Below the pieces are notes generated by a model. It saw only the letters and a list, made by a program, of their open reading frames with translations. It did no database searches and was not told where the DNA came from. A program made the translations under genes and the position numbers. This document shows, piece by piece, positions 7,723-43,018 of a stretch of DNA of 64,000 nucleotides. The DNA comes from Vitrella brassicaformis CCMP3155 (Eukaryota > Protista > Chromerida): NCBI GenBank assembly GCA_001179505.1, contig CDMY01000138.1, positions 62,001-126,000 of the forward strand, in the 5' to 3' direction. The first letter of the stretch is position 1. Each line of letters begins with the position of its first letter.

Positions 7723-9637
7723 CTCTATCCACCCATCCGACGGCTTTGGCGGCGCTGAAGGATGCAGTAGCGGTTTCAGGGAGCACCCTAAGCGCTGGAG
7801 GATGCCGACCTTGGAGGAGATCTGCAGGAGTGTGCGCGCAGCAGGGAGGCTCTAGCGCACAGGAAGACCACACGCGCAGCCAGAGGAGCTTTTCTCTGTC
7901 AAATGACCACTCCTGCAATATGTCGGTCTTGTCGGTCTCTTTTGTGCGTGTCAGAGATGCCTGTGACTCCGGTGTGTGACGGCGGTCTCGCGGGTGGTGC
8001 TACGAAGGCTCTTCGTTGGTCCTGCGGCATTATCAGCCAGCGCCTGCAAGGATTACGTCTGCACATGAGGGCTCTGCTTGCGCAGGTCTTTCTGGGGTAT
8101 CGGCCATGGGGTATCGGCGATTGATTGGTTGATTGAGTGAGGCTGCCGGCGAGCATGCGTCAATGGCGGACTTCGTCGCACGGGGGTGCGTTGGACAGAC
8201 TAGGGAGTGGCTGTTGAGTCCATTTAACAGCACAGGATGGATTGGGATGTGCAGGCGTCCTCGTTGCCACCCACGCGAGGGGTGGTCACTGACGCCCTCT
8301 CGGTTGCGACCCTGAATAGGCCATGTGCGTGAGTGAGTTGTCGGACTCTGTTACACACGATACCAGGCAGGCAGGCAGGCAGGCGGCGAAGAAGGAGCAC
8401 GCCATGCATCCAGTCCGTATCTCGTACCGCCCGAACAGTCAGGCAAGAACAGGGATGTATTCCGCAGCGACTGAGCTTCGATGCATGTCAGTCAATCAGG
8501 TCGTTTGTATTTCCAGGTTTCAAACCAATGAAGCACACGAATCACAGGCAATGGTAGATAATCTGTGTCACTGACTTATGTGTCCCCATATGTCCTTCGT
8601 GCGTCTCATCCATCCACCACCGTCATCATCCACCACTGCACAAGTACACGCAGAGAGAGAGAGATGATAGACAGCGAAGGCCAACATGGAAGGACGTCGT
8701 GTTTTTGTGATTGGTAAAGGACTCGCGATCGGCGGCCAATCCCATGCACTCACACACCGTACGATGCGATGTACTCTGTCTCTCAACCGAACAGACAAAA
8801 CAAAGCCCTATATATCGCATGTGCAACTACTAAATCGGCCTCGAGGCTGGAGCGAGTTGGCATGCCTGCCTTCCTGTCACAGGGCCTTGCTTCTCCTGTC
8901 ATGGAAGCCAACTGACGACATGACGTTGTGAGGCACTCAAGGACGCTTCGCATGCACTCAGTGACTGTGTGGCTTTGTGTCTCATTATGACTTTGGTCTG
9001 GGTCCGTCATTAATTGTTCTCGTTGCTCGCCAGTGCATCGTTGCAGCGAGACACGAGGCGTTTGTACGCAATGTACAAATGGAAGCGCTCAATTTGATGT
9101 GGTACGTATGTGGTCACGGCGGGTCAGCCAAGCGCCTGCCATCTGTCTGTTTATACCCTCCGACCGCCTCCTGTACGTTGGGGTCGGCAATTTTGAAATC
9201 GGCATTTCTGTGCACGGCACTCTTCTGACAGAAGAAAGAAAGAAAGTATATATATACATATATATATTCTTTTCTTTCTTGCTTTCTTAAAAGAATATGT
9301 ATACATATGTACTTTTTTCTTTCATACATCAATGTGTGTACGTATATTTGACACCGAACCATACCTGACACACACACGCTGACTGGTATGCGCTTCCTCT
9401 TGGTGTCCGTGGCGTGGAAGCAGACGAAGGTCCAAACTTCGGGTTGGACCTTCCTTCCTCCTGCGGGTCAATAATTGGTCTGTACATGCCTGTCTTGGTC
9501 CATTCATCCATCCATCTATCCGTCCATCGCCCCAAAGAGCATGTACGACACGACAATTGTCGTGTGCATTGAGAAAAGAGGATGTCGCGTGTTTCTGTCT
9601 CCATCCGCAAAGCAAACCAATCGTCCAAGCAGACATG

Positions 9638-11844: not shown

Positions 11845-13540
11845 GGCGGAGCAACTTCAAAGTTCAACTTGAACTCTCTGCTCACACGCAGGATGATGCA
11901 CCGGCTTCAGAGACCGTTACATTCAAATCCGATTCGGACTGAGGTCCCAAGGAACTGGTCCTCTGATGTGTACAGAACGGATGACGACAGCCCTCCGCGG
12001 CAAACAGCTGCGACCACTGCTGAGGGCTGGATGAACGGGGGTAAGACGCATGGGCACGCCAAAACTGCACGAGGATCTTGACTGGCTCATGCCTGTCTGC
12101 ATTGTTGTCTCTGTCCGCGTCTTTTCCCTCTGCAGCTGCTGCGCCAAATTGGAGCGGCGGTGTGGATGTTGATCTGGCGGTGCAGATGCTCGCGAAGCAG
12201 AAGGCCCCCGGCACGGCGAGGCTGTTCACAAAGGCATGCAGGATGAGCAGAGATCCATTCATCGGGGGTCTGTTGATGGAGATCGTGTGTTTGTGATTGG
12301 TAAAGGACTCGCGATCGGCGGCCGATTCCACCACCTACCGTACTGTAGTACAGAGCCAACACAACCAACACACGTACCGTAACGATGTGCAGTACTGCGA
12401 CATCTCCTCACAATCAATATATCCTAAGCACACAGCAGCACAACACACGGTCAGACACAAAAACATCGTCCAGGTCTCGTCGGTGGCCTCTCTCTCATGT
12501 GGCTGCCTCAGCTGACTTCCCAGCTTCCCTCTCTCAAGCGTGTCTGTGCCGTCGTTGCACGGCGTCTCTGCCTCCCTCACTTCTTTGGCAGTGCGACTGC
12601 TCTGGCGTCTCTGCTTCTCTGTCTGTCTGCCTGTCTCTGTCCCTCTCTCTCTCTCTCTCTCTCGTTCTCTCTGCCTCCCTGGTCCCTCCCACTCTTCCCT
12701 CCCTCCCTCCCTCTGCTGTCGCTTACCGGTTGGTGGTGTGGCGCACACGAAGGAAAGGGCGAAGAAACAGACCAAACAGCGCACAGAAGAGCTCGTCCAG
12801 CTTATTTCTCTCTTGCTGAGTCGCGTGTTCAACAACAGAATTTTTTCAAGCTTTTTGTGTATGTATGTGTGTGTGTGTGTTTGTGGATGTATGTGTGTGT
12901 GTGGCCAGACACCTAAGGGGAAAAATGATTGGATGGTGTCTCGTCACGCGTAATGCACCCAATGACAGCCAAACTGAGTGTGCACATCCGTCAGACACTG
13001 CGGCGGGCCCAAAGAGAAATATCTCCTCCTATTGGTGGTGTGTCTCGTCGGCTCAGCCCTCCAGACAACGACACACACACAGGTCCCACTGGGGCACAGT
13101 CCTCGTATTCGTGAATGCCCAAGGCTCCCAATGGCCGTCACAAGTTGGCCGTTTGTCGAGAGCGTGCTTGTCACGTCCATGGATCGAGAAGTCGTTTGTT
13201 TCTGCGTTAGTTCTGATCTTGAACGGCTTTTTGCCACTCAGCTTGCCTTTATATTTGCTCCTTGTGCACCATGTGTAGAAAGGCAAGTATGGAAGAGATA
13301 GGTCCAAGAGAGAAGCGCCGCTACACACGACCGCTACGTGCGCTCCACCCGGTCTCAAAGTTATCGTCAGCACAAAACATTTCTTTCTATGCCAAGATAA
13401 TTCGGTTCCTTGACAAATACAGATTGCATGAGGATGACAGGGTACAGAACCATACAAAGATACTAGGCGATAGGTATTAAGCCCTTGAACCGAAGATACA
13501 ATAAGGACCGTCCCAGCTCGTAGACGACGAGAGATATGAA

Positions 13541-25070: not shown

Positions 25071-26062
25071 TCAGCTGCCCGTCAGGATAGTCGCATCACT
25101 GGTGATTTTGGCGCCATCAGCACCCTTGATGCTTTCCCTGGGCTCACAACTGCCGTCGTGCGGCTGCTCGGTATAGCGCTGCACACATGCCAAGACACAC
25201 AATGAAGGGAAGACAGACTACGTGTCCTTTCCTCTTCAGATGCGCGCCGTACCACTCGGCATTTGCTGGGGGAACCTTCGCCTTTTGCACACCGTATCTG
25301 CACCGGCGAATGCCCACATGCGGACACGTACGTGTGTGGGTAATAGTCTATGCTCACCTCTACGGAGACCCCATTGAGGTCGTCGCCATCGGGAGGCGCG
25401 TCGCCCTCCAATGTCTCTATCTTCAACCAAATGGCGTCCTCAGAGACATTCGGGCTATCGCTGCCTGTCTCGCTTTCTTCGCAATCACTCGTTGCGGCTC
25501 TGACGGGCACACAGACGAGGGTGTGTGTAGGGGCAAAGGGATCAAAGCAAGGTACCCACCCATTCTTTCGAATGCAAGCTTTCAGGTCCGCATCTCCTTC
25601 TTCGCTGTCGAGGCCTGGCAGAGTCACAGAGAACCACCACAGTGGACGCTGAAGCTTGGCTGACATCAGTGCTTACCGACAGCCAGGTATTTCAAGGGGG
25701 AATCCTCCTCCCAGTTCACAACCACTTCTTCGGTTTTCCCCTCCGCGATGGAAAACGTCCGGTCGTTCCTGGTTTCTGATGAAATGAGTGCACACACACA
25801 TGTCAGGCTCTCCATGTTGTCTTTCTGAGCTTTTGCCCTGTGGACGCACCCGGGCACGCTGCAAGAGAGCGGAAGTGGCGCACACCTGACGCAGAGAGCG
25901 AGATGGGAATGGCGCACAAAGAAGAGAAGGCAAGCAGGCGGCAAGCGGCCATCGTGTTCTGGTGCGTCCCGTTGTCTGCCCTCGCTCACTTGGTCCGGCC
26001 AGCCCAGGAGAGGCAAAGAAGGACAGGCAGAAGAGAACGGCGAGGGTCGGGAGGGAGACCAT
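25071..26062 (-). CDS. Secreted Cys-containing orphan protein (paralog A)
   Basis: Signal peptide MVSLPTLAVLFCLSFFASPGLAG. Spliced exons give VNWEEDSPLKYLAVG, DSEEGDADLKAC, IWLKIETLEGD, IRCAKGEGSPSKCR and HDGSCEPRESIKGADGAKITSDATILTGS*. Homologous to 26572-27707. Confidence 0.75.
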
Positions 26063-26181
26063 GATGAGTGCGCACGCAGAGGAAGAAGCCTGGTGGAGTG
26101 GAAATCCAGCGGCCTTCCAGATCCAGATTTTTCCACCCGTTACTCCCGTTATTTGTACATCGTTGCCCCCCCCCCCCCCCT

Positions 26182-26481
26182 NNNNNNNNNNNNNNNNNNN
26201 NNNNNNNNNNNNNNNNNNNNNNNNNNNNNNNNNNNNNNNNNNNNNNNNNNNNNNNNNNNNNNNNNNNNNNNNNNNNNNNNNNNNNNNNNNNNNNNNNNNN
26301 NNNNNNNNNNNNNNNNNNNNNNNNNNNNNNNNNNNNNNNNNNNNNNNNNNNNNNNNNNNNNNNNNNNNNNNNNNNNNNNNNNNNNNNNNNNNNNNNNNNN
26401 NNNNNNNNNNNNNNNNNNNNNNNNNNNNNNNNNNNNNNNNNNNNNNNNNNNNNNNNNNNNNNNNNNNNNNNNNNNNNNNNN
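26182..26481. other. Assembly gap (300 N) flanked on both sides by poly-C
   Basis: 300 N characters, with a long C run to the left and a C9 run to the right. Confidence 1.
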
Positions 26482-26571: not shown

Positions 26572-27707
26572 ATGGTCTCTCTCCTCCTCTTCGCCGTCTG
26601 CCTCGCGCCGGCCGTCGCCCAGCCCAATTATGTCATCCTTTCAGCCCTCTCCAACCCCGAGCACATCGAGCGCCGCCTCATGAGCCTGAAGCGGTCCAGG
26701 GGAAACAGCACATCTGAGGCGGCAGTCGAAGTGGAAGACGTTCGAAATGGCACCGGTGGCTAACTCACAGACTACGTTGCTCTGCCTTGCTTGCTCTGAT
26801 GACTTCAATTCTGTGTGCCTGGGTTCCCAGATAGCTTCAGGGAGGCCGAAGCTTGTCCACGTATGTCCACAAAAGGACAGAGAAACACGTCATTCGACCG
26901 TGTGTAAGGCCATGCATGACTGGCTCGACTCTTTTCTCGTTCGATCAGTCCCTTGGGTGGATTGCACGCGAGACATCGACGAGGAATACCCTTTTTTCGA
27001 CTATGTCAACTGGGACACATACACTCGATTCCCATACATCGTTGTCGGTAACGGCTGGACCACGCCATGATACACACCGGCTTGCCTCTTTCCATGAGTG
27101 TCTTGTGACTGTACCCTCAGCTGTCGACTCGCACGAAGGCGACGTTGATCTGAAGATATGCACCCGGAGGAACGAGTGGGTACATTCATCTGACTTCCAT
27201 ACTTCTGCTCTTTGCAAACTGTGTGGGTATCTGGGCCATTTCTGAGTCAGACAACCAACGGATCACTGTGTCCGGAGTGAAAGGAGCACCGATCTTGGGA
27301 GCAACTTTTTTGAGGAGTCGATCGTGTTGGATATCAAGAATCTAGAAGGCGACCAAGGTTCTGATGACCACAAAGGAGTGCACGTCACGGTATATGCATA
27401 CACACGCCCGTACACAACTATTCTCAAAGGACCACGCCTTTCGCCTTTTTGGTACAGGTGTCTTGCGTTAAACCCGAAGGACCTCGCAAGAGGCATTGCC
27501 GAGCGGTACGTGCGCGACATATGGATTCCTGAGAGGAAAGAGGAGGACATGCGGTCCATCTTTCTACCGATGTGTGTCTTTGTATGTGTGCAGCGCGTGA
27601 TCACGATGGCTCACGATGGCAATTGTGAGCCCACGGAACGCATTAGGGGTTGTGAAGGCGCCAAGTTCACTGATGAGGCGATAATTTTTGGAAGGGAGCA
27701 CCCGTGA
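26572..27707 (+). CDS. Secreted Cys-containing orphan protein (paralog B)
   Basis: Signal peptide MVSLLLFAVCLAPAVA. Exons give VNWDTYTRFPYIVVG, DSHEGDVDLKIC, IVLDIKNLEGD, VSCVKPEGPRKRHCR and HDGNCEPTERIRGCEGAKFTDEAIIFGREHP*. Confidence 0.75.
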
Positions 27708-30792: not shown

Positions 30793-31820
30793 CTGACACT
30801 CTTCCTTACGTGCGAGTGTGAGAGTGCATGGTTGAACTCAGTGCATGTCGTTTTGAGGTCTGTTTTGAGTTCGCATTGCGGTAAAGCAATAACAAAATAT
30901 TTGACTTGATATTGTCTATGTGTCACCGTTTGTACGTCCCCTTCTGATTGCGCCAAAATAAAAAAGGTGCGGCGAAAGGCGGGTGTAAAGTGTTGACAAA
31001 CGGAGAGCACAGGACAGCAAGATAGAGGGAGGTATGACGGAGAGAAGGAAAGGCTGGCTAAGTAACCATCACGCGATGAATGAGCACATCGAGATGTTGT
31101 TTGCCCTCCCCCGTCTTTCCATCAATCAGGTGCGATCCATCAATCAAGTGCGAATGGATCGGGGGCGGCTGGGGCGGCGGCATCACCATCTGCATCGGCA
31201 AACGAAAGTGACAATGTGTGTCACTGACATGCGCACCGTGTACTTAATTATGTGTGTCTCATGGCTGCTCGTGGCGGGCGCAAATATGTTAGGGGTGCCC
31301 ATGGGTGTTTGTGTGTCAGGTTCGTTGAGGCAGGCAGCTGGCAGGGACCTGAGTGACCCGGCTCCAAGCTAGGTCACCCACACCACAAACTGGAGAATGC
31401 TGGTCTTGTGTGTATGCCGGGAGGATGCCTCTGCGTCTGTGTGCAGCAAGTGTCTGGCTGAGGGAATCACAGCCCGCCACTGCCTGGAGAGGTCCCTACG
31501 TGCAACGATTGTTCTCCATCGACATAGCCCCGTGCGCCTGCTGTCTTTCAATCAGTTCCCCTCCGCCACCACTGCCTTATGTCTCCATTCCACGCAAATA
31601 CAAGAGTGTGATGCTGCCTGGATGTGTGAGCGGATGTGACACGTTACTGACGTATGCACATGTTAGTGGCCGCCTATGTGTTGCGACATGAACATCAACG
31701 ACAATGACATGAAAACGAGCATGTTAGTCCAACTGTTCCAGCTGTCCGCTCGTCATCAATTGCTCGTCATTTGACAGGAATTGCTATCTGTCGGCTGATT
31801 TAAAATATCTATATATATAT

Positions 31821-32024
31821 ACTGTCTTGTGAGTCCATCGAATGGATGTGTTCAACTTGGACTCGTCGAGTCGCGTTTTTTCCCGGAAGTACGCCAGTCG
31901 TTTGCCAAAAGCGAGCCCGAAAAACTCCCATACACAGATGGCGAGACACCATCGCGCAAAATTTTTCTGCCGGGTCAATGAAATGACCATCAACGGGGAG
32001 CGGTCTCGATGCCCAGTTCGTGCT
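31821..32024. repeat. Dispersed ~200-bp element, uninterrupted copy (inverted homolog of 38280-38374 + 39483-39660)
   Basis: 31821-31865 matches the reverse complement of 39616-39660 at 44/45 nt. 31967-32024 matches the reverse complement of 38280-38333 with few changes. An intermediate block (agtcgtttg..ccaaaag.cga.cccgaaaaa.tcc) is also shared. Confidence 0.85.
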
Positions 32025-32196
32025 CCATTCCTCCATTCCTCCATTGCCCCTCCCACCCCCCCTCACGCATCCCCCACATCATGATGTTTAGGGTCAGCCG
32101 GCGTGCAACACACTCGTTGCTAGCAGGGGAAAAGAAAAAAGGAGGAAAACAGGGCTCCCTCTCCATCTCCCCCAACTCTCCGTGTTATTCTGCGTT

Positions 32197-33226
32197 ATGC
32201 GTAGCGTTTCAGCGGCAGCACCATCAGCCGCATCGTCAGTACCGGGATCTGCCTTCCACGCCCGGAGATACGAGAGGCCGGGCCTCACAGTAGACGAAAT
32301 CGAAGAGATCAAAGAAGGTGGGCAACGCAAAACGAACCTGGATGCATGACGGGCTGTATACATCCATCCATCGAGTCTATGCTTCCCTATGTGGCTGCTG
32401 CGTGCAGCGTTTGACCTGTTCGACGTTCACCAGACCAACCAGATAGGTACCTGACTGAGTGACGGGCATGAATGGACGTTGTGTGTATGGCGGCTGTGGG
32501 CTGTGCATGTGCTGCAGATGCCAAGGACCTGAAGAAGGCCCTGCTCTCACTCGGACTCGACGCAAAGAACCAGACACTCTACCACGTGTGTGTGCCTAGA
32601 GAGGCAGGCAGGCGTGCTGCGTTGCTCTTTCGTGTTTATTGCTTCATTGGTTCGATGGTTCAGATGGTGAGTGACCTCGACGAGCAGACGTCCCACAGGC
32701 TGTCGTTTGAGGACTTCCTCGACATGATGACAGCGAAGACGTCAGAGCGGGACACCAAAGACGATATCATGAAGGTATGCATGCACACACCTGACCCGTT
32801 TTCTTCTCTCTCTCTGTGTGATGCATGCAGGTGTTTCATTTGTTTGATGAGGACCGCACGGGCAGCATCACCGTGCAGAACCTTCAGCGAATCGCACGGG
32901 AACTGGGTACGCAATGCGCTGCACTGCATGCATGTATGGACTGCACAACGACTAGGTGATGGCACCACATGGATGGATGGATGGATGGATGGATAGATGA
33001 ATTCAACGCCCCTGTCTGTTGTCTTTCAGGCGAGCTGATGACGCAGGAAGAGTTACAGGTCCGTCAGAACTCTGACCCGATCCACCCACCCCTGCACACG
33101 GGAGCGTATTTCTCGTCCCTGTGTTTGTTTATGCAGGACATGATATCCCGTGCGGATAGCAACGGCGATGGGGAGGTGTCCCCGGAGGACTTCTACGCCA
33201 TCATGACCAAGAAGACATTCCCTTAG
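32197..33226 (+). CDS. Centrin (caltractin), EF-hand protein, 7 exons
   Basis: Spliced protein: MRSVSAAAPS...RPGLTVDEIEEIKEAFDLFD...DAKDLKKALLSLGLDAKNQTLYHMVSDLD...[89 protein letters not shown]. Confidence 0.95.
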
Positions 33227-34242
33227 ATGCACGCGGACACTTAGATAGAGAGCCGAACGGGGGAATGCCTTGCTAGCTTAGGCGAGGGGTGCGTGAGTGT
33301 CTAAGCATGCGTGTTTGTCGTTTGTCCTTTATTTGTACATAGCTCTGCATGTATGTGTAGGGGACGGACGATCGGTGCTTCAAAACACCGGCGGAGATGG
33401 CACGCCCCGCTCACATGTAGCGATCATTCATGGAACACGTCATCGATGAATCAGAGACACGGCGAGCATTCCTGCACCGCGAACAAGACAGGCCGGAGAA
33501 AGTGGATACATTCACCACGACGAGAGACATCAGCGAGTGCCGTCCCTGATGCGCCGATATGTCACACAACACGCGTGGGGCAGACAGGCGAACAAACATG
33601 CAGCACAAATGTCGTGACGCCGGGGGGAGAATGGATAGCGAGACAAAAACGGTACGGTGGCACACGCAGACACGTATGCATGCATGCACTTTGCGACAGG
33701 CAGAGACCTCTCTCCATGTCCACCGACAGGCAGGATTATCATAAACAGTGTCACGTAGAGACAACCACAAAACAATTCATTACAGTAGCAGGCACATGCT
33801 CCAGCCTGCTGGCGACCCTCAGAGCGAGAGAAAGACAGTCGACGTCCGCGTCAGCGCCGACGCGCCTCACTGATACTGTGATTGACATCGTGTGCGTGTT
33901 GCTGTGGTCTCCAAACCGGGATCCATGACGGTCTTCTGATGCACCCTAGTGCTCGATGGACTTGGGTGCTGATGGTTGTGTGTGTGGGTTAAGCCGCAGG
34001 TGCTGTTGTGGGTGGGTGGGGATAGTCGGCCGATGAACGTGATGCATGCCGGCCGTTCGCGGCTTCCTATGCCGGCATATGGTTGAAGAATAGACCCATT
34101 CACAGAAAGGCCCCCCGGTCAATGCATTATTCAGCTGCTTCACTCATCGACAAACACACACACGACAGACGGGGAAGCATCGACACATCTATCTATCATC
34201 ACACGTACACGGCCGTCCATTCATCCGGGCTGCCACAGTGTT

Positions 34243-37200
34243 TCATTCCCTCAAAGCTCGAGGCGTCTTCTGTCCGGCAGTGTCCTCATGCTCATCGTGT
34301 CCATCGGATTGACCTCCGCCCCACGTCAGGTCCGTAAGGTCCTCCGGCTCGTCATAGTCCACCCACGTCTTGTCAACACCACCACCCGCACTCCTGTCCA
34401 CTGCGTCATAGTCCGTGTCATCGTATTCGCCCGTCGTGTCGGGTGCCGAGCCCTCTCCATCGCTCTCGGTACCTTGAGTGTCTCGACGGCTGCTGACGGT
34501 GATCCGCCGCGCGGCGGACTGATGGCGATTTTGCGGGCGCGTCCAATTGATGGCGAAACCTGAGTGTAAAGAGGCAATGATGGATGGACGGTTTGTGGTG
34601 GGAGCGAGTTGATGGCTTACCAACGTTCTCGGGCAGGTCCGCTTCTGCCTCTGACTGGGCCCCTGCACACGTATAGAGGATGTATGTATGTATCAGCCAT
34701 GCATGCACACGTCCACTCCTTTTGAAAATGTCCGAACTGACCTTCGTCGTCAGTGCTCTGATTGACACCATCACTCCAACCGCTGACTGACCGCTGGAGA
34801 AAGAACAGAGTGGACGCACCCACCGATCCAAGGTGTTACATCTCACCTCCCCGCCCACCTTGGTGTTGGTCGACGTGACTCGGCCCAGATCATCCACCTG
34901 GTCGCGTGCGCCCAACACATGCAGCTGGCGACCCACCGGGGCACCACCACCACCACCACCGCCACCAGCATCGTCAGTTGTTGTGCGCATCCCTGTGCGT
35001 GAGAGGGCGGCCGTCAAGTCGTGCGGGCCACCCGTGGCTGTGCTCGCAGCCACGTCAAGGGAGGGGGATATAGGGAGCTTCGTCAGTGACGGCAGGATGC
35101 CCTGATGGATGAAATCAATGACACCGAGAAGAAGACCAAATGCATCGACGAAGGATGCATACGTACATGTGTTATACAAACAGGGTGACGTACGTGTAGT
35201 GTGTCGTATAGCGCGTCCCTCCTCTCCGCGAGTGTGTTGAGTCTGAGCCACGGCTTGCGACGCATCCCCACCCAATGCCAACCCATCGAATGCAAGTGAC
35301 GCGCCTAACATCAAGCGGCACAGAGATGCATACCAGAAAAGGGAGCATTCCTCCCTGGCTGTCTGTCTAGCTTACCTTGAGTCTGATGGGCCCCAGCAGC
35401 TCTCCCGTGAGTGGACAGTAATCCCCCTCGCTCAACAGATCCAATGCGACCTTGCCCGGGCCGGCATCTGGTGGCCCACTTGGCAATATCCACACACCAG
35501 AAACACGGGCATTAGAAACATCCATTTGTACACTTTGCACAATTGGGTGTTTGCTTCCTCACGTGATTCGCGCGTCGCATCTGTAGGGCCCCTTTTGCTT
35601 GAGCAGCGTTACACATCCCTCCAGGCCAAGGCTCTCCAGACATAACAGCAGCTGCTCGTGATAGGACTTCACGGAGACACATAGACGAATATGTGCGTAT
35701 ACGCGCACTTGTAAGAGCCAGCGGACGAATGGATCGCTGTGCATGTGCATCCGTGAAGTGGCCAGGTAGGTAAGTTACTCACTCGTTGTGGTTTGTCCAT
35801 GAATGCCTCGTTGTATCTGCTAAGCAGCAGCTGGAGCGACTGGGGGGCGTGACACGCCAACTCGGGGAACTGCAATGAATTCCACCGCACTGTGCGTCCC
35901 TTGGATCTTCTTGCCTGCCTGCCTACGTGCTGACCTCCACTAGAATGGTGAATGTGAGGCGGTTCATCTGGGTGAAGCGCTTCACGGGCGTCCCCTCCAT
36001 CTGCACGAATGTCAGTCACCCACCAGGCAAAATGTCGTCGTGTGAGCGCGTCATGTGACAGTGCCGCTGTTGCTGACCGTCTCCGACTTGACGAAATAGG
36101 CAAGCAGGCGCCCGAATAGGTCCTGAAAACAACCGACCAACCAGGATGTGCATATGAGGCGTCACCCCTATCCACTTATCCACCCATCCATCCACTCATC
36201 CATCCATCCATCCATCCGTACCAGCCGGAAGTGTCCCGCCAGGATGAAGCCATCGAGGAGGTTGGCCACCTGTTGACACGTGAACCCGCTCTGGCGGCAC
36301 AACACAACACAACACGATACGACATATGCAAACCAACACCACCAATGGGCACGTGGATGCATGTCCTCACCTCGAGGTCCATGGCCTTGTCACCGATGGC
36401 GTCGAGTGTTGCCTCGTCGCGAAGGCCAACCTTGCCGTACGCGTGGGCCACGTTGGCCAGCTCCAGAGTGCCCGCATACTCCAACCGACTCTGACGTAGC
36501 ATGCACCACGAGCACAAAACAAGTATGATCGAAATGAGACCATAGATGGGGATGGGGGCGGTTTGGTGGTTCTCCATTTGTGTCCGTACCCTGAAGGTTC
36601 TGCCCAGGGCCTCCCACGCCTCCACGTCTCGGACACCCAGCCGACCTGCACATGCATATCACAGACACTCAGAGAAGATGAAGGGCATAATTCCCTCTCC
36701 TCCTCGCTGCCTCTCAACCGAGTGTGCATGCATACCAAGGGCCCATGCCGCCTGTGCAAGTGCAATCCTAGGGAACGCCTGTGGCGCCCTCCTCAGCCTG
36801 TCGGCCGCAGCCCTCAACAGGTCGTTCTGGCGAATGCTCAGCCGCCCGTAGGCATACAACAGGATCCCCAACCAATGGCTGTCCAGCCGCGCAAACCTCT
36901 CAGCACTGCCCCCCACCTCCTTGCCCAGGCGCTTGAGCAAGGCCTCGTTCGGCAACTGCCACTTGGCGAATGAGAGAGCTAGCAGAGCCACGGATTGGTC
37001 GTCGAGCGTGTGAAGCAGGCCGGACAGGTGCTGTGTGGCGCGTCTGACGGTGACGAGTGGCAGGTAGCCCAGGCAGGCGAACTGGAATAGGGTGGCGATG
37101 ACGCCTTTGGGTGAGGTGAAGTGGAGCTTGTCTCGCAGACGACGGGAGAGGGACCGTAGCACCTTGGAATACAGTACCTGCCGGCTCTCGATCTCGCTAA

Positions 37201-38200
37201 AGTTCCGCAGCAATCGATACTGCACCCATGGCGACAAATTCATCATGACAGAAACGTACAGTGGCCCTTTGGTGCCATCCTTCCCAACCTGTTCGTGTCT
37301 TTGTCTCTTCTGCATTCTGTCTCTGGTCCACTGGCTAGCCTTGTGCATGGCCTCTCGCGATGGCTTGAGGCCGTACTTGCGCATCGCGTAAGCCACACAC
37401 GCGATGTCGTGCTCGTTGAGCAGATGCCGCTCGGACAGCACGAAGCGCAGCAGCTCATTCAGGTGAATCTTGCGCACCTTGGCCCGGTGACGCGCCAACG
37501 CATGAAGGCTCAGACACACCTGCGAGAGACTGATGCCTGAAGACAGCCAGCGGCACAGCACAGCCACATATATACATACATGCTCATGTTCGTGTGGGAT
37601 GTGGTGCTTTTTTTACCTACCTGCAAGCGATGCACTGGGGCTCTTGCAGTGCCTTCTCAGGTGGTAGGCCACTTGTGTCCACAGGGATGGCCGTCGGATG
37701 TGCAGTTTGCGCGCCGAGAGCGCAAGGGCCAGCAGCTGTGCCGGAGACAAATTCGCTACGCCACTCTCGACGCTGCGCACGAGCTCGGTGAAGCGCTCAT
37801 CTTTGTGCAGCTGACTCGCCTGCATACTCAAGACACAGGCAAGAGAGATAGATCACTCATTGTGCTCGGTCTGTGTGCATATCCCGTCCATCCCTAGGTG
37901 GCGGCTGTCCTTGCCCACCTTGAATGTGGTCCTTGTGAGTTGCTGGAGGTGGTAGATCTTGAGTGAGAGCTTTGTTGTGGCGTCGTACTGGCCCACCTGA
38001 TGCAGCACCGTGCGGACTGTCTTCTCCTCGTCGCGACTGATGAATGGACGCGTGAAGGGCGGCACCACGCGAAGCAATGCTGGGGAAGAGGGCTGGCTCA
38101 CAGCAAGGGAGGTCGTGAGCCGTCGGAACTGCAGTGTTGACGCTCGGATCTTGCATGCCGGAGGCCGCTCGCCGCTCACACGCCATGATGGATGCCGCAT
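34243..38200 (-). CDS. Helical-repeat (FAST/HPR/OPR-like) protein with probable RAP domain; predicted organellar RNA-binding
   Basis: Repeating helices (LALLALSFAKW, LGILLYAYGRL, LANVAHAYGKVGLRD..LDAI, VANLLDGF) and a RAP-like segment (LESLGLEG...GPYRCD). Basic Ser/Arg leader from ATG 38200 and an acidic low-complexity tail. Confidence 0.7.
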
Positions 38201-38374
38201 GGGAATTCACTTGCCCTCGCTTAGCTCGCAGACGAACGGCAAGGAGAAAGGACAAACGAACGGAAATAGAAGGCTCTGAAGCACGAGCTGGGCATCGAGA
38301 CCGCTCCCTGTGGTCATTTCATTGGTCCGGCAGTCATTTCACTTGTTCCTGTGTCTCCCCTGTCGCCGCACTCG

Positions 38375-39482
38375 CACTACAAGCGGTACATTGCCAGAAA
38401 ACTGACCCGGGGGGGTGGGAAACTGTGTTCTGTGCGGAAAACCGGGGCCCCATGCGGAAAACTGAGCCAGGGGCCCGGAAAACTGGTGATCTGCAGTGAA
38501 AAACTGAGGCCCTGAGTGGGAAACTGGCCACCTGCACTGGAAAACTGGTGATCTGCAGTGGAAAACTGACCACCTGCGTGGAAAACTGGTGATCTGCAGT
38601 GGAAAACTGGCACTCCCACGTGGAAAACTGGTTTTCTGCCGCCTGTACCCAGTTTTCCATTGCCTGATGCCAGTTTTCCAGTCAATGTGCCAGTGTTCCA
38701 ATAGATATGCCAGTTTTCCAATGAATGTGCCAGTTTTCCGATGATTCCGATGAATGTGCCAGTTTTCCAGTAGATACACTCAAGATCTAACGCAGCACGC
38801 ACCAGTCAATGCTTTCTGAAGTCAGTGAGAGAGTTGGAGAGAGCGCGGGCGTGCAGCAGGAGGGAGAGAGACACAGGGCAAGGATGGCCGGCCGGCCGTC
38901 AATAAAAGACGGTGTCCGCTCGATGCACCCATCCACTCACTCAGTCATCGATCATCAGTACCTGCCATCATCATCCTCGCCCTCCCCGTGCACCTCCAAC
39001 AGAGGGCAGAGAGCCACCGCACTTCGGAAAAGTGGCACATTCATCGGAATCATCGGAAAACTGGCACATTCATTGGAAAACTGGCATATCTATTGGAAAA
39101 CTGGCACATTGACTGGAAAGCTGACATCAGGCAATGGAAAACTGGGTAGAGAGACTGGAAAACTGGGTAGAGACAGTGGAAAACTGGCATCAGGCAATGG
39201 AAAACTGGGTACAGGCGGCAGAGAACCAGTTTTCCACGTGGGAGTGCCAGTTTTCCACTGCAGATCACCAGTTTTCCACGCAGGTGGTCAGTTTTCCACT
39301 GCAGATCACCAGTTTTCCAGTGCAGGTGGCCAGTTTCCCACTCAGGGCCTCAGTTTTTCACTGCAGATCACCAGTTTTCCGGGCCCCTGGCTCAGTTTTC
39401 CGCATGGGGCCCCGGTTTTCCGCACAGAACACAGTTTCCCACCCCCCTGGGTCAGTTTTCTGGCAATGTACCGCTTGTAGTG
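38375..39482. mobile_element. Non-autonomous CACTA/EnSpm-like fold-back DNA transposon
   Basis: Termini 5'-CACTACAAGCGG...CCGCTTGTAGTG-3', with CG directly flanking both ends (candidate 2-bp TSD). Inverted arms 38375-38768 and 39026-39482 are built from GGAAAACTGG sub-repeats. 257-bp core, no transposase ORF. Confidence 0.8.
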
Positions 39483-40548
39483 CGCCCTGCTGGAATTTTT
39501 CGGGTTCGACTTTTGGTGTCAAACGACTCTCCTGCATGTGAGGATGCTGAGAGCATGATGTACTTTCAGGGGGGAAAAAAGGGACTCGCCGAAAAAGGGA
39601 GGGATAAAATAGGTTCGAGTCCAAGTTGAACACATCCATGCGATGGACTCACAAGACAGTGTATCGCATGGACGAGCGGATAGCTGGAACAGTTGGAGGC
39701 AGCCCGGCCCGTACCGTGGTGTGATGATTCTGCGCTGGATTCATTCAGTCATGGAGGCAGCCCGGCCCGTACATGAGCATGTCTGTCATGAGCAGAGCAA
39801 CGACTGGAACAACGCCGACTGTCTTTCAGTCGGCTGGCGACGTCACAGAGCCACGGGGAGAAGAGAGCAACAAGAAACAACAGGAGGCGGCCAGGAGAAT
39901 GACACCGAGAAAGATGAGTGACTTACTGATGAGTCCATCCTGAGAACGGGTTCTGTCTCCCCTTCACCTTCACAAAACCACACGCAGCCGCAGCCGCGAC
40001 ACAGGATCACCAGACATGTATGTCGCCACATTTGTGCGCATCCCTCGCGCGAAGACCGATTAAAGTCACGTGTGGTATATCTCTAAATTCGACATACTTA
40101 AAATGCGAACACTGTACCGTCCGGCACAGGCGACTGGTGATTCTAATTCTATTCAAAATGTCGGTGTGCTGGATGACAATGAAGTGGAAAATGAAGCATG
40201 GCCATCATGGTTGACCAGTAAGAATATCAGGCTTCTCAAACTTCATCCGCAGAAGACCACTCGGCGAAAGTCTCCAACTCGATGCCGTTGTCTAAACGCT
40301 GACGTGCGGTGATGTCATCAATAGGTCTTGACCCACCATTCTTAACCAGCTCCCCTCACCGTCCATGGACGCACCCAAAAATCGGTACATGACCCACGCA
40401 CACATGCATACTTACTGATAAATCGCGCTCTCTCTCTCATTTTCTCTTTCCCTCTCCCGTCGCTTGACCCACTCCATTCACAGGCCACTCTGTGTGAGTG
40501 TGCATGTAAACACGCGCTTGTCAACGGCCTCGTTTATGTGACATGACG

Positions 40549-43018
40549 CTATGCGGCTGTGGCCTCTCTCTCGGCCTCTCTCTCCATCTCGTCTTCTTCT
40601 GGCGTGAGCATCTTGTAGTCACGCCGCTTGCGCAATATGTCGTCAAGCTCACCCCTGCACACACACACACATATCGCCAAACATGGGGGCCGGGGATGCA
40701 TCATATTATTCTCATTGCCTCCCTGAGTGGGTGGGGGAGTGGGTAACCAACCGACTGACCTTGAGAAGTTTTTGAGCCATGGGTAGAATCGGGCTCGTCC
40801 TCTGGGCGGCTCCGTCATGTAGTCGGTGATGGCCAGATCGACCGCCACCAACTGCACGTCAGCATCGCTCCACTCCTGAACACAGACACGTATTAATACG
40901 GGGGCACAGGTATCTGTGTGTGGCGTGTGGCTTGCCTGGCATCTCTCCTTGACAAGGTCGATTGCGAGAGGGACGACGTCGATCATCTGCTTGACGTATG
41001 CGTCGTGTGTGGGCTCTCCCGTGAACTGCGGCACGATGTCGGCCAGCCATATCAGGCGGTCCTCCGCACTCACGTCATCGCTCAGCTGGCCAAGCTTCAG
41101 CCAGAAATCCTTGCTGGGGGGCTCCAGGCCAAGACCTTGCCTGTGTCCGTGCATCATTGAACCAAACAAAGCGAACACACAACATACAACATGCACGCTG
41201 TGTGTCTGTGGACGCATGGCTGGGTGCACTCATGCCATCCACTCACCTGAGTGCGCTTTGCTGTGCCTCGGTGTTTTTCCATTGAGGCGCGAGCAGGGAG
41301 GCCAACTTGGCGCGCAGGGGGGGCGGGAAAGTCACCGGATTCATTTCCTGCACACGCAGAGAGGCAGGCAGGCAGGCAGGCAACATGCCTTTGCACACCC
41401 ACCCATGCAGAACTGCGCCCTACCTACCTTGAGAACCCGGTAGATGGAGGGCACCCCCTGCAGACATAGCACACAGCCAATCATACGGGTATACTAGATT
41501 GATGGATGGATGGATGGCTGGATGGATGGCTGGATGGATGGCTGGATGGATGGCTCTGTCTATTTTACTCATTACCTTGACAGCATCGACAAAACTCTCC
41601 TGCTCGCTCTCGGTGTCGGCCCTGTTGAAGTCGCGTGTGAGTCGCGCCACGACCAGCTGCCTCTCTGCGTCCTCCAGCTCACGAGCCGTCCACAGCTGAC
41701 CCATCATAGCCTCATATGGGTCCTCTGTGTGGTGCGGAGGCAGCCTCTGAGTTACACAGGCGCGTACACAGAGAGGGAGATTGTGCTTCCTCGTTGGGCC
41801 TTGTTGTTTGACGGGCGTTATACGACTCGGTGAGGTGGGTGACCGACTGAAAGTTTACCTTTGTGGCTTGGACGGCATAGACGAATCGGTCGGGGCTGCC
41901 CGAGAACATATTCATCATGCTCTCTGCCTCCCCCTGTGGCGTGACGTCGAACCCCTTGAGGTCCGCCCAGCCGTCCGACGCCGAGAAGCGGAAGAAACTG
42001 CCCGTTATGTACATGTGCTGCGCGTCGTTCATCTGCTTCCACCACTCCATCTGTAGTACAATATTGATATATCACGCGCACACACGTGCATGCACCAGAT
42101 GAATGATCCGATCTTCGGTACCGACCGACCTTTTTGTTGACGGCTTCCTTGTTTGCATTTCCGCCGGTGAATGCCACGACGCAGAGGCCCCCCGGCTTGA
42201 GCACCCGCCAAGCCTCACGCAGCACCCGCCGCGGCTTGGTGAAGAACTCCATGGCGTTGCTGATAAGCACCACGTCGAAGCTCTCCCTCTGCAGGCCTCT
42301 CTCTCCAATGGCAATCCGGCGCTTGTGGTCGATCCACCCCTCCTCGGAGTTCAGATCCACCACGAACGACTCGGTCAGGGCGGGATTGGCGTCGAGCTCG
42401 TCCTGGTTAATGCCAATGCCCACCACTCTCGCGTACTGGCGGTCTCCTGGGAGGTAGCTGTAGCTGCCCGCACCAATGTCGAGCACCGAGATGGCGCCAC
42501 TTGGGAAGCATCGCGCGTAGTGGTTGGTGAGTGCGATGCGGGCCGGTTCGTCGAAGAAGGGTCGAATGTCAGCTGTGGAGAAGAATTCGATGTCGCTGGT
42601 GTTGTCAGTGCGCTTGAACTGGTCCTTGCGGAACGGCCAAGCTGGAGGCCACTTCCACATGTATGGCTCTACCTTCAAACCTGACAGAGACGTCACATCC
42701 CAGGCATAGCATACACACGGATATACGTGCACTGCAGTGACTGTCTGCCGCATCCATTGCACCCACAGCCACTCACTCACCAGGCTCGGTTTGGTTCTCT
42801 GGCGGGACATCTGGGAAGTTGCCCTTGCCTGAGAAGTTGTTGAGCGACTGCCGGATGTCGAAGGCCCTCAAAGCGGTTGCCTTGAGCCTTCGCAAGCCGC
42901 GGGAGGTGGGAGATCTTGGTGCAGAGAGGGCGGGAGAGCGAGGTGTGAGTGGCGAGGGTCTGAATGCACGGCTGACATGAGTGAGGAAGAGGACAGTGAT
43001 GGCTGCTGATGGAACCAT
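40549..43018 (-). CDS. Class I SAM-dependent methyltransferase-like protein (cyanobacterial/plant Methyltransf_11 type) with bipartite plastid-type leader and C-terminal extension
   Basis: Leader [29 protein letters not shown]. Core [57 protein letters not shown] and [13 protein letters not shown]. Confidence 0.85.

Follow-up and report, generated by a model that had tools for sequence, protein, structure and literature searches.

A probable non-autonomous CACTA/EnSpm-type transposon with foldback-type arms at the RAP-domain gene of Vitrella brassicaformis

Next to a RAP-domain gene of Vitrella brassicaformis CCMP3155 we found a 1108-bp unit that is very probably a non-autonomous cut-and-paste DNA transposon of the CACTA/EnSpm (CMC/CMCT) type with foldback-type arms. 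It is a true insertion that separates two blocks of a conserved module upstream of the gene, and its end belongs to the leader of the RAP mRNA. All positions given below refer to the window, i.e. the whole stretch of 64,000 nucleotides of contig CDMY01000138.1 that was analysed.

Anatomy and boundaries of the element

The unit starts with CACTACAAG, ends with CTTGTAGTG and is composed as follows:

38373–38374, no strand: left copy of the putative 2-bp target-site duplication, CG
38375–39482, no strand: whole non-autonomous CACTA/EnSpm-type element, 1108 bp
38375–38768, plus strand: left arm, 394 bp
38769–39025, plus strand: unique interior, 257 bp, without a transposase
39026–39482, minus strand: right arm, 457 bp, mirroring the left arm
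39120–39182, minus strand: 63-bp block of three 21-bp units present in the right arm only, position approximate within the repeat
39483–39484, no strand: right copy of the putative 2-bp target-site duplication, CG

The coordinates confirmed what an earlier note had claimed for the extent of the unit, its termini and the CG immediately outside both ends. Its description of the arms as inverted copies of 394 and 457 bp, with a few substitutions and three extra 21-bp units, also held: when the left arm is compared to the reverse complement of the right arm, the two differ by 4 substitutions (1.0%; 38409/39448, 38634/39223, 38695/39099 and 38762/39032) and one 63-bp gap.

Both arms are built from arrays of the 9-bp motif GGAAAACTG. 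In the left arm a 21-bp terminal segment is followed by 12 outer motif copies that point inward (38396–38630) and by 6 inner copies of reversed orientation (38650–38768), while the right arm contains 12 outer and 9 inner copies. The outer block of the element measures 256 bp. All 26 exact copies of the motif in the window fall within the element, where 0.39 copies in the window would be expected by chance, and allowing one mismatch raises the number in the element to 39, distributed over both orientations. The motifs are spaced by 19–21 bp with a mean of 20.5 bp, which corresponds to about two helical turns and places all of them on the same side of the double helix. Identity among the outer 21-bp units is only about 60%, indicating that the array is old and that its mirror symmetry either arose recently or has been maintained. 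Compared with their nearest sisters, the three extra units of the right arm show differences at 2–3 of 21 bases, far above the difference between the arms. A loss from the left arm would therefore be likelier than a recent gain in the right arm, and the 63-bp block was probably lost by slippage between two similar units. A single strand of the element can fold into a near-complete hairpin with a computed energy of -584 kcal/mol as DNA, so that, judged by sequence, extrusion of a hairpin is possible.

The interior contains an ATG at 38884 that is followed by 9 codons and then by GT and CA-rich sequence; judging from this arrangement, it is possibly a stub of the start of a parental gene or a captured piece. 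No recognisable coding match was detected in the element. An ORF of 223 aa over the right arm was rejected as spurious, having neither a Pfam family nor a homolog, and the ORFs of the element altogether were taken as spurious, none being present in the protein collection by exact sequence.

Testing the boundaries at offsets from -4 to +5 did not reveal a duplication longer than 2 bp at any of them. Since CG is palindromic, the flanking bases can represent either a 2-bp duplication or an extension of the inverted repeat by two bases. A 2-bp flank match has a chance rate of about 6% here and was seen at one copy; the CG duplication is thus consistent with a transposon but no proof of one. Shifting the boundary inward by one base also yields a 2-bp match, but with non-canonical ends, and we prefer the CACTA boundary because it combines CAC..GTG termini with a duplication. 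Immediately to the left of the element the target (38367–38378) reads CGCACT, which is at once repeated by the duplication and the terminus (CGCACT CGCACT). The repetition may be fortuitous, a footprint of older date or the result of a preferred target.

The insertion site and its element-free paralog

Both flanks of the element belong to a duplicated upstream module, the second copy of which lacks the element:

38277–38333, minus strand: conserved block D of the module, left flank of the element
39490–39695, minus strand: conserved blocks A–C of the module, right flank of the element
31728–32027, plus strand: diverged element-free paralog of both flanks with blocks A–D in the same order

The paralog is located about 6 kb away on the other strand and precedes a centrin-like gene with its ATG at 32197. 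The centrin-like and the RAP gene are convergent and share the module as a duplicated, inverted upstream region. Its four blocks (27 bp with 96% identity, 49 bp with 96%, about 35 bp, and 61 bp with 85%) are separated by diverged spacers. When the flanks were joined without the element, they aligned to the paralog across the insertion point with a score of 226, as compared to a mean of 33 and a maximum of 56.5 for shuffled sequences. The distance between blocks C and D is 36 bp in the paralog; at the RAP locus it is 46 bp without the element and 1156 bp with it. At the exact insertion site the paralog is too diverged to fix the length of the duplication.

The proposal that the unit represents a real insertion was thus borne out, the flanks being adjacent in the paralog and a spliced RNA contig crossing the left junction. 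The collinear element-free paralog and this contig together make an assembly artefact unlikely. Independent sequence support covers the left junction, and the right junction is given by the genome assembly alone. The insertion had also been called young. A 1% difference between the arms and an intact putative duplication fit a recent event, but arm identity is no insertion clock: identity between the ends dates LTR elements, not elements with terminal inverted repeats (TIRs). The insertion is probably recent.

The module itself may represent either a promoter that was duplicated or a repeat of older date. Its copy at the RAP gene carries a B-box-like sequence, GGTTCGAGTCC, near 39611; searches detected no tRNA genes in the window and no Rfam families in 31000–41000. 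An exact 21-bp direct repeat (39694–39714 and 39752–39772, 58 bp apart) begins at the outer edge of the module. For the centrin-like gene (32197–33227) the genome annotation gives 177 aa. An MMETSP protein of this gene, named calmodulin and 159 aa in length, runs into intron sequence after DIMK and therefore derives from an intron-retaining transcript; no contig is recorded for this protein.

Two further repeats were observed elsewhere in the window. A 56-bp direct repeat with 89% identity (8689–8744 and 12275–12330, both non-coding) is possibly another shared regulatory block. Furthermore, an inverted paralogous coding stretch with 73% identity occupies 25091–25236 and 27538–27681, its two copies being separated by a 300-bp N gap (about 26181–26481).

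The RAP transcript and splice-like sites in the termini

The gene next to the element encodes the 875-aa protein CEL93108.1 of V. brassicaformis CCMP3155 (contig CDMY01000138.1; the RAP exon is 100% identical). UniRef names it a RAP domain-containing protein. Since a Pfam scan of CEL93108.1 found no family at E 0.05, the RAP name is drawn from the UniRef annotation and from helical-repeat relatives. The features of the transcript and of the element termini in the sense of the gene are:

34243–38200, minus strand: RAP-domain gene CEL93108.1 with 16 introns of 61–116 nt in the RNA contig
38201–38401, minus strand: 5' leader of the RAP transcript, its first 27 nt being element sequence (RNA contig ERR558152_1487)
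38375–38384, minus strand: acceptor-like site GCTTGTAG|TG (TTGTAG|TG) in the left terminus, AG at 38378–38377
39466–39474, minus strand: donor-like site GCG|GTACAT in the right terminus, RAP sense, GT at 39471–39470

The Logan RNA contig ERR558152_1487 (run ERR558152) is spliced at all 16 introns and encodes the full protein with the 875-aa frame intact. Its first base is 38401, which lies 27 nt into the element, and from there it runs across the left junction with 100% identity. The RAP gene is therefore still expressed and intact, and the insertion is tolerated. With the ATG at 38200 on the minus strand, the distance of 175 bp between the RAP start codon and the left end of the element given in the earlier note is correct. 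Its placement of the element just upstream of the gene applies insofar as the two adjoin, but at least the terminal 27 nt lie within the RAP transcript. The contig ends 29 bases into the stretch common to both element ends, which we take to be the branch point expected of the Logan assembly graph with its 31-base words. Five upstream ATGs are found in the leader (38401–38201), one of them (MYRL) contributed by the element and four by host sequence; one of the host-derived ATGs is in frame but meets a stop ahead of the main ATG.

Transcription of the RAP gene may start in the left arm, at the displaced blocks A–C, or from the methyltransferase gene whose end lies 1066 bp to the right of the element. 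A search with the protein of this neighboring gene returned the genome contig as the only match. A leader reading through the complete element would contain 19 ATGs from the element as well as arms that fold strongly (z about -9 and -11), which should hamper translation.

We considered whether, in addition to being a CACTA insertion, the element is masked by splicing. Transcription would then start at the old promoter to the right of the element, the hairpin would bring the terminal GT and AG together, and 1095 nt would be removed while 15 nt stay, namely 13 nt of the element and the 2-nt duplication; the same would be left in either orientation of the element. The donor-like GCG|GTACAT resembles the donors of this gene itself (GTACGG, GTACGT, GTATGC), and the acceptor-like TTGTAG| is canonical. 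The gene is moreover expressed although an unspliced leader would bear 19 more ATGs and strong structure. A precedent exists in maize, where Menssen et al. in 1990 reportedly described a dSpm in A2 that is spliced out via sites in its termini (cited in PMC8195511). Against this stands the only RNA contig available, which reads through the acceptor unspliced and has no spliced junction, with the reservation that contigs show presence, not absence. In addition, all 16 introns of the gene measure only 61–116 nt, and any CACTA end automatically provides an AG ahead of its terminal TG. Splice masking is thus possible but unsupported, and we regard it as unlikely; it would add to a CACTA insertion as the best explanation, not replace it. 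Rather unlikely, too, is the broader scenario of a still-active chromerid CACTA family in which the element acts either as a hairpin-bridged 1.1-kb intron among introns of about 80 nt or as a new RAP start site under the control of a transposase. If this were true, a relative of the apicomplexans would harbor a controlling element of the McClintock type, and the promoter copy on the centrin side would serve as a built-in control.

Classification and significance

Two features characteristic of CMC elements are present: the terminal inverted repeats have CAC(TA)...(TA)GTG termini, and a short motif is repeated subterminally in both the direct and the inverted orientation. At the same time the TIRs are long and modular, with tandem units inside them and a short domain in the middle, which corresponds to a foldback architecture. 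The termini, the motif arrays, the lack of a coding match in the element and the modular arms agree with the proposal of the earlier note that the element is CACTA-like, non-autonomous and of the foldback kind. An autonomous CMC partner would encode a DDE transposase with CxxC and HxxxH motifs between such ends; no transposase family was detected in the element or in the 50 ORFs of the window that were scanned.

The first 9 bp, CACTACAAG, are identical to the termini of maize En1, Tpn1 and Tdc1 (PMC3193017 Table 2). As in plant CACTA elements (En/Spm, dSpm, Tpn1, Tdc1, Tgm), motifs are clustered subterminally in both orientations, and as in non-autonomous members the element has no coding capacity; the splice-like sites in its termini are shared with the maize En/Spm group. 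In contrast to plant elements, the putative duplication here comprises 2 bp instead of 3 bp, and 394–457 bp are mirrored where plant elements have TIRs of 13–27 bp and asymmetric subterminal regions (PMC3193017, PMC2613891). The motif is also unrelated, and the host is an alveolate. Outside plants, CACTA elements with CAC..GTG ends and 2-bp duplications are known (PMC6004678), and duplications of 2–5 bp have been assigned to the CMCT clade (PMC12730594). ENS1_Cis of Ciona and the CMC-NA_1 and CMC-NA_2 MITEs (PMC6004678) have CAC..GTG ends, a non-autonomous state and an inference of mobility from a paralogous empty site in common with our element, and their 2-bp duplications correspond to the putative one here. 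The arms described here are far longer and modular in comparison to these elements, the sequence comparison with them being limited to the termini. Drosophila FB, Galileo and Tetris (PMC4079207) in turn resemble the element in the succession of an outer segment, tandem units, an inner domain and a short middle, as well as in a number of units that differs between the arms. They differ from it with regard to the CACTA ends and the putative 2-bp duplication, Tetris having duplications of 8–10 bp (PMC4079207), and each arm of our element holds two opposed motif blocks.

The foldback design arises repeatedly when the transposase is lost and the TIRs become longer, mostly in Mutator-related elements (PMC4079207). 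The long symmetric arms with tandem units could therefore belong to a foldback of another superfamily (Mutator/FB-like or P/Galileo-like) or to a separate lineage, with CACTA-like ends by chance. We consider this very unlikely: the 8–10 bp target-site duplication of Mutator/Foldback (MULE) elements, which the Mutator-assigned Tetris also has, was found at none of the boundaries from -4 to +5, where no duplication exceeded 2 bp, and the 9-bp identity with the En1 ends fits CACTA. Least likely of all, in our judgement, is a non-mobile origin, either by local inverted duplication of a minisatellite-bearing segment or by mis-assembly of two repeat ends. Such an origin would be compatible with the single copy in the data searched: BLASTN and a motif scan found no second copy in the 64-kb window, and the 21-bp terminus had no match in viral contigs. 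Three hits of the 19-bp terminus in metagenomes were dismissed as chance matches, as they diverge right after the pattern and have no motif arrays. It would be compatible also with a short-read assembly that contains gaps, among them the N run mentioned above, and that is the sole source of the right junction. However, the flanks rejoin collinearly with the element-free paralog and the left junction is matched by independent RNA data. Four substitutions, 63 bp of length difference and a unique interior are not expected of a fold-back chimera, and canonical termini are present together with a putative duplication. Against the CACTA reading itself stand the single copy in the data searched, a duplication of just 2 bp that is palindromic, the failure to retrieve a transposase with these ends, and fully symmetric arms that are unlike those of plant CACTA elements.

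For the CACTA-type transposon that we favor, we propose that a DDE transposase from another locus of the Vitrella genome would recognise the CACTACAAG ends, and that this transposase or a TnpA-like helper would bind the 39 motifs, all on one face of the DNA. The complex would pair the ends, excise the element from a donor site and insert it at the present position, where a stagger of 2 nt would duplicate CG. The element may have originated through internal deletion of a larger copy or because one end was duplicated, the left arm having presumably lost three units later by slippage. RAP transcription would now start in the element or read through it. In maize and Arabidopsis TnpA binds clustered subterminal motifs (PMC2613891; bioRxiv 10.64898/2026.08.24.746577), and the units of Galileo are extra transposase-binding sites (PMC4079207). 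By analogy, the element would work like dSpm, and it is built like a foldback. A cluster of TnpA motifs placed in a host promoter renders the gene responsive to TnpA (bioRxiv 10.64898/2026.08.24.746577), and following this precedent a regulatory effect on the RAP gene is possible.

In the Vitrella genome paper class II elements account for only about 0.17 Mb, and CACTA/EnSpm is not named among them (PMC4501334), and our literature search found no paper linking Vitrella and CACTA. The element therefore appears to represent an undescribed family within a known superfamily. To a transposon specialist this will be unsurprising unless splicing or transposase-dependent regulation is shown. With one of two paralogous upstream modules interrupted and the other not, the locus nevertheless constitutes a natural experiment. 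The element suggests that cut-and-paste transposition has recently been active in a free-living relative of apicomplexans, and it could point to a native transposon tool if an autonomous partner is intact.
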